A program made the position numbers and the translations under genes. This document shows positions 61-60,968 of a stretch of 64,000 nucleotides of DNA, piece after piece; position 1 is the first letter of the stretch, and every line of letters starts with the position of its first letter. This DNA comes from Blepharisma stoltei ATCC 30299 (lineage: Eukaryota > Protista > Ciliophora), in contig CBFDEM010000051.1 in the NCBI GenBank assembly GCA_965603825.1, positions 496,001 through 560,000 on the forward strand, read 5' to 3'. The notes under the pieces were generated by a model. The model was given only the letters and a program-made list of their open reading frames with translations. It had not been told where the DNA came from and did not search any database.

Positions 61-560
61 TAATTACAATAAAAATTTTATGTTATTTATGATAGATAAA
101 GGCTAAACAATAAAGGAACGTAGAGATAAGGAAAGAAAAAGAAGAGAAAAATTGATTCATTGCTTCTTAACTACAGATTTTATTTGGAAGTATCTATTGC
201 TTTATGAGCTCACGCACCAATGAATATTTTGAAAAGTCTCTCTTAGCTCATAGTTAGATTGCATTATTTGAGAAACTTAAGCAACAGAAAAATTTAAACT
301 TAGTCAGCCAACTCAAAAAATATGCTTATGTCAAAGTTTTCAAAACTAGTAGTAAATTCAATAAATTAATGTTTGAATCAGTCATTAGTATAAACATTCT
401 CTAAAGTGCTTCCAATAATATGCTATAATATCAAAGCTAGATATTAAAATTTTGGACACTGCTAATTTAAGATTCTAACTCAACTTAATTTTATAATAAT
501 CGACTGTAATTTCGGCAATTAATTTAATAATGAGGTAATGTAAACTAAACGCCAATCAAC

Positions 561-43633: not shown

Positions 43634-46600
43634 ATGTTTACGAAAGGCTATAGTATCAAATACAATACAGAAACTTCTCTAAATGCTGTTAACGACATGA
43701 CAACCTTTACGCACGCTATCAAAGAATATGCTCCGAAAGAAACTAAGATTCCCTTCAAAGGAAATTCTTTAGCACTATACGATGATGACAGCAAATTCAT
43801 TTTTTGCAGTGTTGAAGGTCGTGTTGCAGCTTGTGACAGAAATAAAAATGATGAAATTATATATGATGTCCAGCTTCCTGGAGGTGGGCTTTACGCATTA
43901 ACTTTATTTAAGGACGAAAAGCACTTTTTGACAGGAGGTAAAGAAGGAGTCATTCGCCAATATACCCTAGGCAACAAAGAATTTAAGTTTGTAAGGGATT
44001 TTCGTGGCCACACCAACAAAATCAGTGAAATTATACTGTCAAAAGATGAGACGCAACTATATAGCTGTAGCGACGATTCGACAGTCAAGATTTGGAACAT
44101 GGAAACTGGGCAACCAGAAGACATTTATACTCATGGTGACCGCGCTTTAACTATGGATTTGTCAATCGATGGGAGATATTTAGCTACAGGCAGTGCTGAT
44201 AAAACAACCAAGATTTACGATCTGCAAGAAAGAAAGATAATAGGAACTATTGAAGGAGCAAAAAATACTATTTGGTATGTAAAATTTAATAAAAAATGCA
44301 CAAAAGTTGCTTCAGGAGATAATGATGGCGTTGGGTATATTCACGAATTTGGAACCTGAAATATCCTTCATACATTAAAAGGTCATGATAAAAGGGTCTC
44401 TTGCATTGAACTGATTAACAACGACAGGCGCTGTGTAACTGCAAGCAATGATACCACATTAAGAGTTTGGGACTTAGTAAATAATTCGAACCCAATAATA
44501 TGGAAATGGCATCTAAATTGGGTAAAAGCTATGCTAATCAGCAGCGATGAGCTAAACGTTTTCTCAATATCAGAAGATCATAGAATTATAACCTGGAGAG
44601 TCCCAGAGTTTGACGAAAATAGCATTAGGTTAACAAATGGGCATACTAAAGATATTTACAACATTATTTACTCACAAAAGCGAGGTTTATTTTTCACGAA
44701 TGCAAATGATAACTTAGCTATTGCATGGGATTTCAACACAAAAAAGAAAGTTCATGAATTTACCCATAAGGATGGGGTTTATGCGAAGTGTTTAACTCAT
44801 GATGAAAATTATCTAATTACTTGTACAGCAGCAAATGAAGTAATTTACTGGGATCTTGATTCATACACTCAATCCTCTCCAGAAGAACCAAACGAAGCAA
44901 CAATTAAGGCAATTTTAGCGACTAAAGATGGAAAGTATTTAATTACAGGTGACACTATCTGCAGAGTTACCATAAAAAGCATAGGAAATTCAGGGAAAAA
45001 CACAACTCTAGCTGTTTTTAGAAAGCATAAAGCAACTATCTGGTCACTCGCTGTCAACTCTACATCAACACTTCTTTTTTCAGGCGATGAAACAGGACTA
45101 ATTTACGAAATAAACCTCATAGATGGAAATGAAATTTGTAGCTTCAAAGGCCACACGGGCAAAGTAAAATGCTTGGAAGTGTCTAAAAACGACAGCTTCT
45201 TGGTATCTGGATCGTGGGATAAAACGTTCAAAGTTTGAAGTATCATAAAACGAAGTTTAATAAAGAGCGTTACTGTAGATGATACTGTTAACACAATTTA
45301 TTTCACAAATGATAACAACTATTTTATGATGGCTCAAAAAAACCAATTTGTTTCTATATGAAGTTTAAGAAATTTTACTTTAGTGACTGAAATTAAATAC
45401 GATAAAGATTGCACTGCGCTAGCCCTAACTTCAGATGAGCAATATATGATAACAGCCGAACAGGAAAATATATATATAACCAAAAATCCATTATCATCAA
45501 GTTCTTTTTGGATCTATGGAAATAGAGATATTTATGAATTTTTAATATACCTCAAATACATTATTATCGGAGAGCCTAAGCCTTATAAGCCAGAAATGAA
45601 TAAATATTTGATAGCTCCGGTAATGATGAATATTGTGCATGTATATAGCTACTTCAATCTAACCTCCCATCTAAAAAAAGCATTACAAGACGATGCTCCA
45701 TTTTTCTCTTCGAAAAAAAATGTAAGTCCTCTTTCTCTTTGCCTGTCAAAAGATTATCCAGATGCTGCCAGTATAATTATAAACTGGGTCATTAGCAACT
45801 TAAAAACAAACATTTATGCCGCAAAATGCATAGAAGATTCTCTCACAACTTTAAATTTCAAAGGCTACCCAATTATAAGTGAGCTTTATGAGAATTTTTG
45901 GGTGAACACGAAAGATCATACTTTGCCAAAATTCTGCCCAAAAAGTATTAAATTTCCAATAACAATTTCTTCAAGAAGTATTGAGCCTTTTTCTGAAAAT
46001 TTCTTCAAAGAAAATGTCAGTGCAAATGAAGGAAAATCAGTGAAATATTTTATTTCAACGGTCTGTGTGAATATGGCACCTGGATCAAAAGAAAGCATTG
46101 CATTTTTAAGAAGTATATGAAAATGCTCCAATGAAGAAATTTTTAGAACAAAATATGTAAAGAATTTGCTCCATTATAAATGAAATCAACTTTGGTGGAT
46201 AAAAGTCATAGAAGCATCTATATACGCTATTTACATGGGCTATTTAATAGCTTATGCGATTAACTTTCCTGGGTATGGAGCTGAAGCAGTACCACTGTTT
46301 ATAATTAATCTCGTACTTGTCGGGATCGTTATATATAGAGTTCTGACTGGCGGAACAGTTGTTTTAGAAAGCGGATGGGATTTGATTGATTTACTCCGTT
46401 TTGCATGTTTAATTATATATGTCCTATTTATCTGGTTCGATTGCTGGCAAAGCAACAACAATTATCTATTTACGTTGCTTATTTTCTTATCGTTCATCAG
46501 AGGTATTTCATATTTCCGCATATTTGAAGAAACCCGATATTTAATTCACCTTATCCAAGAAGTTTCATTTGACATCGGCTCATTCCTTGTATTGCTGCTC

Positions 46601-47242
46601 TACTCCACTCTTTCATTCGGTGTCATTTTTTATACAATTCAAAACAACTCAGACCTTCACATAAAGGACTATCTAACTATGGCTTATCGAATTGATTTAA
46701 ATGATTTTGACACAAAGGGTTTTAATTCTTTTGAGTGGGTCATATTCGGCTGTGCAACGCTGGTTAACTCAATTATTATGCTGAATTTATTAATCAGCAT
46801 CATGGGTGATACCTATGAGAGAGTCAATGATGGAATGATTGTTGCTGATGGAAAAGAATTGGCTAATTTGATCATTGATTGCGAATTGCTGCTAATTTGG
46901 AAAAGAAACAAAACGGTAAAAAAATATTTGCAAGGATGCAGAGAAGAAGGAGACAAAGTTGACGAGACGTGGGGAGGCTCGACAAGAGAAATTAAAGATA
47001 AAGTAACGGTGATGAAAAAAATTATAGATGAAGGGGATAGGGCAGCAATTGAAAAAATTAAAAAACTGAATGATGAAATAAAGAAGGTTACAGATGAAAA
47101 GCTCAAAGATGATGAGACTAATCTAGGCAAAATAATTGAAATTATTGATAAAGGAAGCTCCAAAGTGGAAGAAATGGATGAAAATATAACAAAGTTGGCT
47201 GCAAAGATTGAAAAGTTGCTGAAAAAGAATAATACAAAATAA
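43634..47242 (+). CDS. WD40-repeat, ankyrin-like and TRP-like 6-TM cation channel with C-terminal coiled coil, about 1202 aa
   Basis: Four same-frame track ORFs join via TGA=Trp. Many GH...WD repeats; an SPLSL ankyrin-like turn; RGISYFRIFEETRYLIHLIQEV and IIMLNLLISIMGDTYERV (TRP/PKD-type S4-S5 linker and S6). Confidence 0.88.
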
Positions 47243-47585: not shown

Positions 47586-47993
47586 ATGCACGAAGACCAC
47601 GGGAAGTATTTTTCATTTGGGAGACATTCTTATACTGACTATCATGGCGATATGAACGATCCTACAGGCCTAATTGAATACCCAAACTCCAGTTTCCATC
47701 CAAGATTTCTTTCAGCTCGCAAATCAGGCTTAGAGCGTGGAATAGACCCAAAAGAGAAATGGATGGCTTACTGTAAACCAAGCTGTACAAAAGAAGAAGC
47801 CATGGTAAAGAGATGCGAAGAAGCCTTGAAACTGCTTAAGGTTGGCGACAAGTCATGCATTTATAGGTATAGAGAATGGGTGGAATGTGTTGAAAATTGT
47901 GTGCAACCCAAAATCTTCTATCATCTTAGTGGAGCAAGCCGCAAAGGTCCAATAGATTGGCTCAAAGGACATGGGCTAACTGGACTTCATTAA
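47586..47993 (+). CDS. Ubiquinol-cytochrome c reductase hinge subunit (QCR6/UQCRH-like)
   Basis: DPKEKWMAYCKPSC...KRCEE...KSCIYRYREWVECVENCVQPKIFYHL, the hinge cysteine pattern. Confidence 0.8.
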   Translation: MHEDHGKYFSFGRHSYTDYHGDMNDPTGLIEYPNSSFHPRFLSARKSGLERGIDPKEKWMAYCKPSCTKEEAMVKRCEEALKLLKVGDKSCIYRYREWVECVENCVQPKIFYHLSGASRKGPIDWLKGHGLTGLH

Positions 47994-48502
47994 TAAAATT
48001 ATGTGGAGAACATAAATTGGTGATTTTATACATAAATTAAGAAATTAAAGGAATAGAAAATTTAGATTGAGAATTTTTCAGTAAAATATACATTGCATTA
48101 TCACTTTTAAAGCTCTAAAATTAGTCTCATTTTGAATATTCAGTCATGATATTTAAACAATTAAACGTTTGTGCTTATTATAAAGGAAATACTTTATATA
48201 CATTTTAAATGTCTCCAGCCTCGATAATTTGAATGTCTTCTCTCTTTTATAAATTTATAAAACAGGTCTATTTTTCAATACAGCCGTTTAATAAAATATC
48301 AGCTTAAATTCTAAAAATAAAAATTTAACAAATTATTTGGTTAGATAGGAAACTGCAATATTTGATTTCCTCATACAGATTTTTTATATTACTAAATCAT
48401 TGATTAATTTAATTTATATGCAAATCTTAATTATAAAACAAATATAATAACTAATTCGTTATTAATATTCTTTATAAAGAAAAATATAACCCTTTAAGCT
48501 TA

Positions 48503-51500
48503 TTAAAGAATCATCACCTTTTCTCTACTAATTCCTTGCGTTTCAACCATTTTCCCGATCCATCTATTAAACCCAGACGGTCCGCATACCCACACTCTTG
48601 AAACACCTCTGCTTCCAACCTGGCTTCTAAGCATATCATCATTAATTTTTCCTCCAATTCTTTCGCCATCTATATTTATATGGACAACCAAATGTGTGCT
48701 AAACTTTTTCTGAGTCGCTTCTAACAGATCCAATCCAAAAGCCTCTGACTTAGATCTGAAACTAACATATAAGAAGAGACAAAAACCAGTTGGAGCATGG
48801 TCATTCCATATAGAATAAGCTAAATCTAAAAATGGAAGAATCCCAGTGCCAGCTGCAAAGCCTAAGTAAAGACCTGAAGACAGCTGAGTAAGAGCTAAGC
48901 CAGGTCCTAATGGCCCTTTAATCTTTATAGTGCTATTGCTATCAAGATTGTATATAAAGTCTGACATTTTCCCATCTGGGTAATGCTTGATATACAATTT
49001 TAAGCTTCCAATAGTGCTTGACTCATTGTACTGAGCTGCATTAAATTCGCATTTGATTCCTTCAGCTTCTATTTGCTTTTTCCAACTATAAAGATTAGCT
49101 GACACCAAGCTATAGTATCTTCTAACTACATTCAGCCCTATTTTTGCTTCAACTTGGAAGTGCTTTCCCATCCACTCTAATCCTTTTGGCTTTTCTCTAA
49201 CCTCATATGCATTTGATCTCAGTTCTACGCAAACTGTGCTTTGAGATATATTGTGCTTTCTAACAATTTCCCAAGTCATGCTCCAATCAATTGTGTCACC
49301 TTCTATTGGCTTAATTATATTGCAATTTTTTGCGATATTTCCTACTACCAAGCTATAAGCTAAATTTTTAGCCATCTGGGAATGTTCATATGGAAAAGTC
49401 CCATCTCCAATGCTGCTGCACCCATTTATATATTTTCCTACGTCTTCTCCTATCACATCTTTTAGCATATATGCGCCACCAGGATGATTTTGCATAAAAC
49501 CAGAAATATCAAGCACATATTCATCTAAAAATACCCACTGTGATTTCTTTATGTTTATTTCATCCAATATTTCTGAGTGGTTTAAGCCTTTTTTGTCAAT
49601 AAAAGTGTCTTGCATTTCTTTGTCTGCTGTGATAGTTGATTTTCTATTGATTTTTTTTCTTTTAAAATTAAATATAAAAGGCATAAATAAATGGCCAAAC
49701 CTATGCCTAATTTCCAAAACTGCAAAAACGACACAAAGGACTCCATAAAATACATAAACTGTATGTAAGTTGGTATCATTTTGCCTTATCTCCCAGCCAT
49801 ATTTTAAGTTAACTAAAGCTGGGATCAAGCAAGCCCATCCAATGACAGTGTGAATTCTTCTGGATACTCTTAATACTGACAAATCTTGCTTAAACATCAT
49901 CCATATTTTAGTGAATAGACCTGTAACAGCTTGTGATAACACTAAGGTGCACAAATAAAAGCCTATTCTTGAGTGATAGCGAGGCTTATCTGACAAAGCA
50001 TCATAGCCCAACTTGTCTTTTTTATAGACAATATAAACGCTCGCAAGTGTGAAAAATATTACGACAGCGCCTGACAGTGCATGAATTAAGTATGCCATAA
50101 AGGACCATTTGAAATATCTGATCGCCATAATTCCAACTTGTACAACGCAAAGCCACATAACTGTCATATAAATTCCATGGTTTTCATAAAGAGCTCCGTC
50201 GATATCGTCTCCATGATGGAAGTATGAGTCAGCTTGAGTCATGCCAAGCTTGATCTTACCCATCCCAACTGCATTGTGAATGGGAAATGTAGTCAAATCG
50301 CTTTCTGAATTATATGCAAAGCAAAATTCTGTTATCATGTTCGGCTTTAAGACTACGTCACATTTAGAATCGCCAGTATTCAAAAGACGAGTTACAGTGA
50401 CGACCATTGTTTTGTTTGCTGTAAATTCAGCATTAATCATGTTCGCGTTATTTTTACAGCCTTTTAAAGAAGAGTCTTGGCTTGGAGTTGTGTAGCCTGA
50501 GCTGTATGAATCCCAAGCTTGGAAAGCTCCGTTTTCTCTAATGACGATTATCATATCAGTATCTTCCATAGCATGCCCAAAACCTATTGCGCACCACCCA
50601 TCAAATTTGCACTAAATAAATTTTACATTGAATGTGAAGGTTACTTGTGTCTCAGTCATAACCCATGATAATGAAAAGTTTGGGTCTAATTCTACACTAA
50701 CTGTTTCTGCTCCTCCTTGTGTATAGCTGCTTGTTCCTTGTGTGCTGCCTAGTTTCAGAATTCCAGATCCTACATGGTTATGTCTATTGAAAGCTTGCAA
50801 ATTAGGCTGATCTAAATATGCATAGCAAAAGCTCGTTACCATATTTGGGTTTAATACTTTATCGCACTTAGTGTCGCCTGTATTTAGTGGTCTTGTAACT
50901 GTAACCAACATTTTTCCATCGACAAAGCTGGAACTTTCTAGCACAATGTTATTTTCACAGCCAGGAATTGTAGCATCTCCATTAGGTGGTACATAGTCAA
51001 TGCTATATGCGTCTAAAGCTTGAATAGTTCCATTTATACGCGTAACAATGATCATGTCTGTATTTATCATTGCTTGGTTGAAGCCTATGCCACACCAACC
51101 ATCAAATGTACACTAAATAAAGGTTACGTTAAAGGTAAAAGTGATATCAGTCTCGTTCATTAGCCATGACAGAGAAAAGTTTGGATCAAGCTGCATGGTG
51201 ACAAGCTCTGGGTTTAGCATAAAATAGGAACTATCCTGAGTGGTTCCAATTTTCAATATTCCTGACCCTACACTGCTATGTTTGGTGAAGCTCGTCAGGT
51301 TTGGCTCATCTAGATATGCAAAGCAAAATTTCATAGGCACATCTGGCACCAAAACTTTATCACACTCATTATCCCCAGTGTCCATCAATCTTGAAAAAGT
51401 TGCAGAAATCTGGCCATTATCAAAGCTTGTGCTTTTAACTATTATGTTATTCTGACATCCCTGTATGCCTGTGTCCAATTGTGGCTGCTGAAATGTAGTA

Positions 51501-52262
51501 CTATACGCATCCCATACCATAAGTTCTGAATTTTCTCTGATAAGAATTATCATATCAGTGTCAGTCATGGCTTCATTAAATCCAATGCCACACCATCCAT
51601 CAAAAGAACACTATATAGAAATTACGTTAAATGTAAACACAAGGTTAACTTCATCTTCAACGACCCATGATAGTAGAAAATTTGGATCAAGTTCGACAGA
51701 AATAATATCAGGAGGATTATTGAAGTAAGCATTTGCTTGGGTTGTGCCAAGTTTTAGCACACCAGATCCTACCATATTGTGTTGGGTGAACTTTGTGAGG
51801 TTTGGCTTGTCAAGGTATGCAAAACAGAAGTTTGTGACCATATTAGGAGCTAGTACAATATCGCATTTAGGATCTTGGGTATTTAGAAGACGGGTGATAG
51901 TTGCAAGCATAATACCACCTGTAAAACTAGCACTTTCCAGAATTATATCGTTTTTGCATCCGGAAATGGCGCTATCTTGGGCTGGAGTCTGAGGTTTAAA
52001 GCTGTAAGAATCCCAAGCTTGCATTAACCCATTTTCTCTGATTAAAATGATCATATCTGTGTTAATCATTCCAGAATTAAAGCCTATCCCACACCAGCCG
52101 TCAAACGAGCACTGAATAAGAATTTACATTGAAGGTGAAAGTTATTGCAGTTTGGTTCATTATCCAAGATAAATGAAAATTTTCATTTAATTCAACAGTT
52201 ACTAAGTCTGCAAGTGAAAACGCTAAGGAGATATAAAGAATGAAAAAGGTGAATTTTACCAT
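48503..52262 (-). CDS. Signal peptide, 4x DOMON, cytochrome b561, cytochrome b5 and FNR-type FAD/NAD(P)H reductase fusion, 1232 aa, four introns
   Basis: MVKFTFFILYISLAFSLA signal peptide. Four GWC(G/A)IGF..M..TDM...H repeats. b561 histidines in ENHG, IHAL, YHSR, RIHT. b5 motif HPGG...HS. Reductase motifs RRYYS, GPLGPG, AAGTGILPF, VCGP. The spliced length (3699 nt) is an exact codon multiple. Confidence 0.92.
50612..50626 (-). other. 15-nt intron GTAAAATTTATTTAG (DOMON4)
   Basis: Joins TFTFN to CKFDGW. Confidence 0.93.
51113..51127 (-). other. 15-nt intron GTAACCTTTATTTAG (DOMON3)
   Basis: Joins TFTFN to CTFDGW. Confidence 0.93.
51611..51625 (-). other. 15-nt intron GTAATTTCTATATAG (DOMON2)
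   Basis: Joins VFTFN to CSFDGW. Confidence 0.93.
52112..52127 (-). other. 16-nt intron GTAAATTCTTATTCAG (DOMON1)
   Basis: Joins TFTFN to CSFDGW; removal is needed to keep the signal peptide in frame. Confidence 0.92.
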
Positions 52263-58337: not shown

Positions 58338-58519
58338 AAGAAAGATATTATTTATATAATTAATTGTAAATTTTTGTTGCTGAATGAATAATTAGCTGGC
58401 TAGTATTAAATTAAGTTGATATCATAATCCTTAGGGTTTTTTCAAGTTTCCTTCAAACTTTTTGGCAAGTTAATTATTATTTTAAATAAAGCCATTTAAG
58501 TCTAATTTATTGAAATCTT

Positions 58520-60968
58520 AATATTACAGGATGCGTTAATAATGTAATATTAGAAAAATCAAGCTTTACTAATGGAGCAATGACAGCAACCATATCAAGA
58601 CTCCTCAGCACAGGAGACTCTACTTGTGATAAAGTGTTGATTCCTAATATGATCACAGGATTTTCTTATGCTTATCTCAATCAATCAAATCTGCAGAATT
58701 TTACTATGCACAGCAAAAAAGAGTCAGGAATTTTGGGCCCCACACAGGGCTCCTCAAGTTTTAGTATAGGTGGATCAGAGCTAGTCACAGTTGATTTAGA
58801 CCCAAAATTTTCTTTGACATGGATTATGACAGCTACTGAAATTACTTTTACTTTTTTATGCAATTTTGATGGGTGATGCGGCATAGGATTTGGAGAATCA
58901 ATGCTTAATACAGACATGATTATTGTTATGAGGGTTAATGGAAAATTCCAAGCTTGGGATACGTGAAGCACATCATTCGCTGCCCCTGAAAAAGATGAAA
59001 GCGTCAGTGGGTGCAAAAATGATATTGAATTAGTCAGTTCAATATGAAATAATGGGACCATGCAAGTTGTAATGACGAGAAAATTGAGCACTGAGGACAA
59101 CAAATGTGACCTAGAGTTAGCACCGAATATGATTACTGGGTTTTGCTTTGGATATTTAGTGCAAACCGATTTAAGTAGCTTTGGAGAACATAATGTTGTA
59201 GGAAGCGGAACACTAAAACTAGGGACTTCGCAATCAGATTCCTATTTTCACGGTGAGGCTTCTTCACTATTCGGAGATCCTTATGAAAATCATGGAATAG
59301 AAATGACTGTAATATGGCTTTGCACTGCACAAATTGGAATCATGACCATGCGCTACTTGAAGTGATGAAGGCTTTCGGTTTTTTTTCCATTTCACTGCGT
59401 GTATGGCTTGTGTGTGTTTTACAGTAGGGTCTGTATATCAGACCTATAAAATAGATTTGTTACCTTATAATACAATGACTGAGAAAGTCCGATATCACTC
59501 TCGAATCGGCTTTGCTTTATGCTTCTTTAATTTTGCTCAAGTTGTGATAGGCTTAATAGCAAAAATCTGAATGCGATATAAATAAGACTTATCAGTTTTA
59601 AGGCTTTCTAGAAGAATTCATGCTATTTTAGGCTATATTTCTTGTATCCAAGCATTAATAAATTTGAAATACGGCTGGGAGCTTAAAAATGACAATGATA
59701 AGCTATGTAAAGTTTAGGATATGCCTCTCTGTGCTTATTAATCTTCGTATTGGAATTAAGGCATAGATTTGGTCATGTGATAAGCCCCTTTTATGCAATT
59801 TTAAAAAAACAAAGGTAAACAGAGCCTCTCAATTGAACCCAAACAATAAAGAAATGAGTGTAAACTTCGTAGATAAAAATGGAATGAACCACATAGAAAT
59901 CATCGAAAAAATACTTAAAGAAAACCTAAAATGGGTATTTTTTGATGAATTTGTGGTGGACGTTTCTGGATTTATGCAAAATCATCCTGGCGGAGATTAC
60001 ATGCTGCGAGAAGTAATAGGAGAAGATGTGGGGAAATATATAAATGGATGCTCAAGCATTGGAGATGGAGTTCTACCATATGGGCATACTCAAATAGCAA
60101 GAAATTTGCTTAATATTTTGGTAGTTGGAAAGATTGGCCAAACAAATGACTATATTTTGAATAAAGATGGGATAACTGATGATACTTGAAATATGAACTG
60201 AAAAATAGCAAAGAGATATAATCTTTCCTCGACGACCCAATCCATAGAATTCAAATCACATAAATGGGCTGTTAGAGAATCTCCAAGAGGATTTGAATGG
60301 ATTGGAAAGCATTTCAGAGATAGAGCAGTTATTGGATCCAGAGTAGTTAAAAGATACTATAGCTTGCTAGCTGCGAATTTATATGATTGGCATAAGCAAG
60401 TTCAAACTTAAGGATACTCAAGCGAGTATTCAAAAAATCAATATGTAGTCCCAGATAGCAGAGAAAACCTAGGCTATGTATAAAGCATTATGAGAATGGG
60501 AAAATATCTAATTATTTATGTACCCTTGACATTGGGTACAAAGTTAATATTAAAGGGCCTTTTGGTCCTGGTCTTGGACTTCAAGAAATTCCGCCAAATC
60601 TTTGTCTAGCCTTTGCTGCGGGAACTGGGATACTGCCATTTTTAGACTTAGTATACACAATATGGAACGGCCTTACACCTGAAGGATTCTGCTTATACCT
60701 TTATATAAGTTTCAGAACAAAAAACGAGAGTTTTGCCTTAGACTTGCTTGAAGCCACACAAAGGAAATATAAAGCGAAGCTCATTTTGGATATAAATATT
60801 TCTGAAGAAAAAATTGGGCAAAAATTGACGTTAGAATCCCTTGAAGCAAAAATTAATATAGCAGAAATATCAAGAGCTTGGGTTTGTGGGCCATCCGGAT
60901 TCAATAGATGGATTATTAATATTATAGAAAATCTTGAGATAAAAAGAAATCTTTTGATGGTTCTTTAA
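58520..60968 (+). pseudogene. 5'-truncated, disabled paralog of the DOMON-b561-b5-FNR gene
   Basis: Colinear with 48503-50950. In-frame TAA 59583, TAG 59715 and TAA 60409; frameshifts near 59380 and 60470 and probably near 59720; no signal peptide or start codon. Confidence 0.88.

Follow-up and report, generated by a model that had tools for sequence, protein, structure and literature searches.

A gene in the heterotrich ciliate Blepharisma stoltei (ATCC 30299) encodes a four-repeat variant of a widespread and apparently uncharacterised family of protist proteins, in which DOMON domains, a cytochrome b561, a cytochrome b5 and a reductase module of the FNR type are joined in one chain (DOMON-b561-b5-FNR). 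The gene lies on the minus strand, at 52262..48503 of a 64,000-nucleotide window (contig CBFDEM010000051.1, positions 496,001 to 560,000), which we take to be somatic genome with TGA read as Trp and introns of 15-16 nucleotides, consistent with the results below. Its product is probably a CYBDOM protein with a b5/b5-reductase of its own, leaning to reduced nicotinamide adenine dinucleotide (NADH), that reduces one-electron acceptors outside the cell or in a lumen. The question it bears on is by which route ciliates move electrons across plasma and vacuole membranes. Many alveolates have no FRE or NOX homologs; homologs of the FRD superfamily, to which these enzymes belong, are absent from 18 alveolate proteomes, and alveolates are the main group lacking them (PMC3591440).

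Gene structure and expression

The gene comprises five exons, whose codons sum to 1232 (45+162+161+162+702), and four AT-rich, phase 0 introns bounded by GT..AG. Exon 1 (52128..52262) holds the start codon, a likely signal peptide (about residues 1-18, by eye) and the first two strands of DOMON 1. Intron 1 (52127-52112, 16 nucleotides) separates it from exon 2 (51626..52111), which encodes the core of DOMON 1 (Met codon 52069, His 51781; Pfam DOMON E 1.6e-15), a linker and the first strands of DOMON 2. After intron 2 (51625-51611), which has an in-frame TAG at its end, exon 3 (51128..51610) supplies the core of DOMON 2 (Met 51568, His 51280; E 2.4e-18) and the first strands of DOMON 3; after intron 3 (51127-51113), exon 4 (50627..51112) supplies the core of DOMON 3 (Met 51070, His 50782; E 1.8e-18) and the first strands of DOMON 4. 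Intron 4 (50626-50612) is 15 nucleotides long, as are introns 2 and 3. Exon 5 opens with the core of the membrane-proximal DOMON 4 (50234..50611; Met 50569, His 50278; E 1.2e-14) and continues with the cytochrome b561 domain (49685..50200), the cytochrome b5 domain (49337..49579) and domains of the b5-reductase type for flavin adenine dinucleotide (FAD) and NADH or its phosphate, NAD(P)H (48503..49324), up to a TAA stop. In every DOMON repeat the intron has an equivalent position, directly 5' of the Cys in C-x-F-D-G-W-C.

This gene is expressed as one spliced transcript encoding one polypeptide. Transcript evidence comes from assembled contigs of four public runs of a single study (X1-X4), which were guessed to be RNA. 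A single contig of X1 (48492-52259) and a single contig of X2 (48517-52226) each span the gene, with 61 gap letters falling exactly at the four intron sites and no coverage of the flanks. Introns 1 and 4 are absent from the contigs of X1, X2 and X3, and introns 2 and 3 from those of all four runs. Because the introns are missing and coverage is bounded by the gene, the contigs are read as spliced RNA. The public B. stoltei annotation (GCA_914767885.1) likewise gives a product of 1232 residues with identical start and stop.

An earlier note on this DNA, made from the letters alone, had proposed four tiny introns and a single 1232-residue chain. Both are confirmed by the gapped single contigs and the public annotation, and the junctions place the DOMON and reductase parts on one transcript. 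Four separate open reading frames, or an artefact of read-through, are ruled out by the spliced contigs together with the public gene model. A bacterial origin and an assumption of the standard code were also rejected, since paralogs of the gene read through TGA as Trp and one homolog bears the name Blepharisma stoltei.

Domains, cofactor ligands and membrane topology

Database searches and structure predictions were run exon by exon. Pfam detects DOMON in exons 2-5 (E 1e-14 to 2e-18), and exon 5 adds Cytochrom_B561, Cyt-b5 (E 3.8e-9), FAD_binding_6 and NAD_binding_1, the last falling below the Pfam cut-off. The motifs HPGG..HS, RRYYS, AAGTG and CGP named in the earlier note are found in exon 5, where the b5 HPGG with its second His and the reductase motifs RxY(S/T), KxY..G..S, GxGxxP and CGP are all present. 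Pfam matches, motifs and predicted folds thus bear out the assignment of four DOMONs, b561, b5 and an FNR module to one chain.

The DOMON repeats share 48-61% protein identity (about 60% at the DNA level) and are joined by short linkers of about 15 residues. An alignment shows that Met15, His111/112 and five cysteines are common to all four. A profile of relatives aligns this Met and His with the ligands of the cellobiose dehydrogenase (CDH) cytochrome domain; a phmmer search of the PDB with one DOMON exon gave no match, while the relatives' profile did match. The claim that every repeat keeps its Met and His therefore stands with one correction. The Met of TDM, named earlier as part of the ligand pattern, varies (53/86 relatives), and the predicted heme ligand is the first Met, in G-F-x-x-x-M, kept in 78/82. 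The DOMON His is kept in 69/86 core sequences.

Ligands in the remaining domains are more strongly conserved. The four b561 histidines (His145, His177, His213 and His254 in exon-5 numbering), kept in 85-86/86 core sequences, align with those of 4o6y and lie on four separate helices. His376 of the b5 HPGG motif is kept in 86/86 and the second b5 ligand, His410, in 85/86; RxY, KxY, GTG and CG are kept in most of the 86. DOMON His apart, cofactor ligands and flavin motifs are retained in 81-86/86. All predicted ligands for seven hemes and FAD, as first proposed, are therefore present and nearly invariant among relatives, and the protein is predicted to bind both cofactors.

Structure predictions agree with these assignments. 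The exon 5 model (predicted local distance difference test, pLDDT, 82.6; predicted template modelling score, pTM, 0.69) has five helices after the DOMON, as does a model of its DOMON-b561 part (92.2 / 0.79). Its DOMON 4 matches the DOMON of DBH (Z 10.7), and the b561 part is most similar to Arabidopsis b561 (4o6y) and Dcytb (5zlg); the Z of 13.6 is barely above that of unrelated helical bundles, and the sequence profile backs the assignment. The reductase gives Z 21-22 to Cbr1, CYB5R3 and Ncb5or, with b5 reductases outranking NOX domains. Asp648 aligns with the Asp that follows a strand in b5 reductases (relatives have Asp or Ser), and Asp at this specificity position favours NADH. The predicted nucleotide preference accordingly leans to NADH.

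The DOMONs are predicted to face outwards and the b5-FNR part to be cytosolic. Nine basic residues follow the last helix, and sequons occur in the last outer loop and in the DOMONs. An N-terminus outside and a C-terminus inside would follow from the five helices, the very basic C-terminal tail, the outer-loop sequon and the likely signal peptide. This prediction upholds the earlier view that the membrane separates the DOMONs from the reductase.

Proposed electron pathway

The protein would act as a CYBDOM that supplies its own reductant. In the cytosol, the C-terminal b5-reductase-type domain would oxidise NAD(P)H by hydride transfer to FAD, which would hand on electrons one at a time to the tethered cytochrome b5. 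The b5 domain would dock at the cytosolic b561 heme (His177/His254), from which an electron would cross to the outer b561 heme (His145/His213) and reach DOMON 4 with its Met/His heme. DOMON 4 would then reduce fairly high-potential one-electron acceptors at the cell surface or inside a vacuole. Ferric and cupric chelates are the most likely candidates, with quinones, radicals or a partner metalloenzyme as alternatives. Heme potentials suggest that electrons flow downhill along the chain to an end point too positive for superoxide to form efficiently, which makes metal chelates, quinones, radicals and partner enzymes the likelier acceptors. The three extra DOMONs are read as heme-binding copies that arose by tandem duplication of an intron-bearing unit and most likely extend reach or store electrons, with heme-to-heme conduction possible. 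The built-in supply of reductant would replace ascorbate, and the protein would fill the role of FRE-type reductases, which a six-frame search did not detect in the genome.

The plant CYBDOM HYP1 offers a precedent: it carries out transmembrane electron transport at the plasma membrane, reducing Fe3+ and Cu2+ via the corresponding His pairs, and is fed by ascorbate (PMC10784544). An extension of reach has been proposed for single DOMONs (PMC10784552). Relatives in which the same core is fused to an outer redox enzyme, a heme peroxidase or a multicopper oxidase, also support the pathway. So do the failure of the six-frame search to detect FRE/NOX domains in the genome, the scarcity of FRD homologs among alveolates (PMC3591440) and the retention of Met and His in each DOMON repeat examined, here and in other heterotrichs. 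We infer this direction of electron flow and these acceptors. The family is a directly testable candidate for transmembrane electron transfer in ciliates, being single-chain and expressed, and the absence of TGA-Trp codons from the gene eases heterologous expression. The earlier description of a self-contained conduit survives in its structural part (one chain, seven heme ligand sets plus FAD, opposite membrane sides); the serial wire along the DOMONs, the acceptor and the location stand as proposals.

Several observations weigh against the proposed pathway. For every family member the function is read from sequence and models. FNR-type enzymes usually end in an aromatic residue beside the flavin, and this chain ends in Leu, as its relatives do in Leu or Met. 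The linker at residues 327-339 of the exon 5 model is of low confidence, so inter-domain geometry is poorly fixed. Conservation of the cytosolic basic residues R165, K168 and R251 means that ascorbate-type donors may also bind; the HYP1 ascorbate-site residues Arg307/Asn311 correspond here to Leu247/Arg251. Finally, the apparent absence of FRE/NOX depends on a six-frame search of the genome (41.46 Mb, 64 contigs) that gave no match to PF01794, PF08022 or PF08030 but was limited by the TGA=Trp code and tiny introns, with the PF08022 control also silent.

Relation to known systems

By the features tested, the protein belongs with the CYBDOMs, extended by b5 and b5-reductase domains. It shares with the CYBDOM family (Arabidopsis HYP1/CRR, animal FRRS1/SDR2, insect CG8399) outer Met/His DOMONs, here N-terminal, followed by a four-His b561 bundle, and the opposite-side topology by prediction. 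In contrast to this protein, characterised CYBDOMs are ascorbate-fed and lack both b5 and flavin domains on the cytosolic side, and no member compared has four DOMONs. Two DOMONs occur in some insect members (PMC10691727).

The FRD superfamily (FRE/FRO, NOX, DUOX) likewise takes electrons outward from NAD(P)H in one chain, over FAD and a pair of membrane hemes, and its DOMON-FRE subfamily in Naegleria and oomycetes carries one or two outer DOMONs (PMC3591440). DUOX has a peroxidase-like domain, as do some DOMON-b561-b5-FNR relatives. However, the membrane part here is a cytochrome b561 with four His on four helices, unlike the Ferric_reduct domain with its His pairs on two helices, and the reductase is of the b5-reductase type with an extra b5 relay. 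Membership of FRE/NOX was rejected on these grounds: there is no PF01794 match, FAD_binding_6 and NAD_binding_1 stand in place of FAD_binding_8 and NAD_binding_6, and the His lie on four separate helices. The relation to the FRD superfamily is one of convergent build.

Parts of the chain recur in other enzymes. The diaphorase part of nitrate reductase and Ncb5or/CYB5R4, which are top structural matches, have the same order of Cyt-b5, FAD_binding_6 and NAD_binding_1, but here the acceptor is a fused membrane b561 instead of a molybdenum centre or a separate protein; no Pfam match to a molybdopterin or CS domain was found in the gene product. The CDH cytochrome domain and AIR12 share the DOMON fold with Met/His ligands at aligned positions. 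They differ from the present DOMONs, which are predicted to be fed across the membrane, come in four copies and have neither a GMC flavodehydrogenase nor a glycosylphosphatidylinositol anchor.

Paralogs and family distribution

The architecture is not confined to this gene. The genome holds ten further apparently intact genes with the DOMON-b561-b5-FNR core, each with one DOMON, and these paralogs carry read-through TGA codons. Two of them, L002 (on contig C44) and L008 (C24), do not have the junction intron common to the others, which suggests intron loss. A broken paralog lies in the window at 58517..60968 (+), with at least 1.5 DOMONs plus b561-b5-FNR and about 50% identity to the intact gene. 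Its reading frame shifts several times and meets two in-frame TAA stops, and it has neither a DOMON-junction intron nor a clear signal peptide. Eight further DOMON matches fall outside the b561 family (contigs C33, C30, C10, C53, C4, C54 and C12).

Beyond B. stoltei, at least 74/169 sequences examined by profile search have the order DOMON-b561-b5-FAD-NAD, most with a single DOMON. Carriers include Stentor, Fabrea, Euplotes, Stylonychia, the glaucophyte Cyanophora and the stramenopile Platysulcus. A unique architecture is ruled out by these sequences, the ten paralogs and multi-DOMON forms in other heterotrichs. The earlier note had therefore overstated its rarity: the core is a multigene family here and widespread in protists, and other heterotrichs have versions with five and six DOMONs. 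Its statement that no characterised protein has the full architecture agrees with a literature search, which found no paper describing DOMON-b561-b5-FNR, Iyer et al. 2007 being outside its scope. DOMONs fused to FAD/NAD oxidoreductases have been mentioned in general terms (PMC10784552).

A non-ciliate clade (FastTree support 0.99) carries extra outer enzymes, in most members a heme peroxidase near Dictyostelium peroxinectin and myeloperoxidase. The proximal His motif is present in most of these peroxidases, and the distal motifs where the N-terminus is present. Such peroxidase-DOMON-b561-b5-FNR fusions include P0086, P0121 (Cyanophora), P0160, P0151 (Platysulcus), P0089, P0103, P0104, P0106, P0107 and P0129, and an Atlas cluster of the fusion has 179 members. 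They amount to a DUOX-like layout built from non-NOX parts and are possibly of greater interest than the B. stoltei gene. In another member, P0093 (L028, L029), a chain of 2338 residues, a DOMON-b561, a multicopper oxidase and a DOMON-b561-b5-FNR follow one another, a possible fusion of reductase with ferroxidase.

The multi-DOMON arm and alternative roles

Lengthened arms occur in environmental heterotrich-like contigs with 15-nucleotide introns and the standard code, where the DOMON-b561-b5-FNR core carries five (L030:83-4258), six (L031:1559-6037) and at least two (L033:80-2629) intron-separated repeats. In each, a 15-nucleotide intron precedes the Cys, as in the Blepharisma gene, and Met and His are retained in 12/12 repeats examined, as in 4/4 here. 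These genes appear in databases as fragments; multi-DOMON arms are under-counted there because gene callers that ignore tiny introns split them. In a tree of repeats, the environmental heterotrich copies group as one clade (100/99), separate from those of Blepharisma; DOMON 4 of the Blepharisma gene pairs with the one-DOMON paralog on C44 (96/81). The tree favours separate amplifications of an intron-bearing unit, though a shared origin followed by homogenisation is also compatible with it. Distant forms with two, four and 20 DOMONs sit elsewhere in the tree or match list. The longest, P0026 (L025:4770-18668, on a eukaryotic metagenome contig), has 4632 residues and 20 DOMONs on a b561-b5-FAD core, 16 of them near-identical, with Pro/Ser-rich spacers. 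Long DOMON arrays also exist without any reductase. The natural series of one, four, five and six DOMONs provides a ready test of the role of the extra outer hemes.

The lability of the arm bears on what the extra DOMONs do. They may stand outside electron flow, as modules for heme capture, adhesion or sensing or as near-neutral repeats. The range of repeat number from 1 to 20, the arrays that occur without a reductase and the broken copy with extra DOMONs 6 kb away all fit such a role; yet the repeats here have diverged to 48-61% identity with both ligands and five cysteines retained, and the idea is considered rather doubtful. Alternatively, the four DOMON hemes could be a serial wire reaching several nanometres out from the membrane and delivering electrons to acceptors on particles or prey, which would extend the proposed pathway and is compatible with it. 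Linkers of about 15 residues, ligands retained in every repeat examined and arms that seem to have lengthened independently two or more times in heterotrichs, and also outside them, speak for conduction. Head-to-tail beta-sandwiches, however, would need a folded-back arm to bring their hemes close enough, the spacers of the 20-DOMON relative are Pro/Ser-rich, and most family members make do with one DOMON in a family whose arms range from 1 to 20. Such a wire is judged unlikely.

A further alternative concerns the acceptor. As an analogue of NADPH oxidase, the protein would pass electrons to O2, directly or via quinones such as the pigment, and the superoxide or H2O2 would serve killing in food vacuoles or signalling. 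The well-supported non-ciliate clade with an N-terminal heme peroxidase has a DUOX-like layout, the six-frame search detected no NOX in the genome, and AIR12 reduces O2 slowly (PMC13452876). Against this, the potentials of b561 and Met/His hemes lie far above the O2/superoxide couple, unlike those of NOX hemes, and a peroxidase fusion fits equally well a wire that reduces the peroxidase, that is, H2O2 removal. The gene itself has no peroxidase, and genome searches detected neither a peroxidase nor a copper monooxygenase partner, controls being silent too. An oxidase function is thus very unlikely. Least probable of all is a partial coupling, in which ascorbate or another small donor feeds b561-DOMON and the b5/b5-reductase tail regenerates the donor or serves cytosolic acceptors: basic residues conserved on cytosolic loops, the ascorbate dependence of characterised CYBDOMs (PMC10784544) and the flexible tether to b5 in the exon 5 model are in keeping with it, but the order of fusion and the full ligand set are conserved from ciliates to a glaucophyte and a stramenopile, and a hydrophobic residue here takes the place of HYP1 Arg307, seven residues before the last His.

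A broader, speculative proposal is also compatible with these results, though more doubtful than not by a wide measure. DOMON-b561-b5-FNR proteins could be a second eukaryotic class of transmembrane oxidoreductase driven by NAD(P)H, assembled independently of FRE/NOX, which they would replace in ciliates, and with DUOX-like and ferroxidase-fused branches of their own. The lengthened heterotrich arm would then be a multi-heme conductor or electron store, a counterpart of bacterial multiheme cytochromes. If true, b561 and b5 parts gave rise to the NOX/FRE design anew, and even to a DUOX-like fusion with a peroxidase.

Additional observations on the locus

All 24 Trp codons of the gene are TGG (24/24, no TGA); the paralogs have 35 TGA to 123 TGG, and other long frames of the window 105 to 106. 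Selection linked to expression may account for the lack of TGA. Neighbouring genes on the plus strand encode a cytochrome bc1 hinge protein (47586-47993) and a 1202-residue protein with WD40 and ion-channel parts (43634-47242), with no functional link implied. Second contigs of run X4, over 48914-50854 of the window, differ at 15 single letters and probably represent another allele or strain.

The GCA_914767885.1 sequence, presumably an assembly of the macronuclear genome with internal eliminated sequences (IESs), agrees with the window except for insertions of 233, 549 and 211 bp in exons 1-2 (at about 51816, 52159-52170 and 52224). One of the three has palindromic ends, repeats 2-4 and exon 5 are free of insertions, and these extra segments are probably germline IESs.

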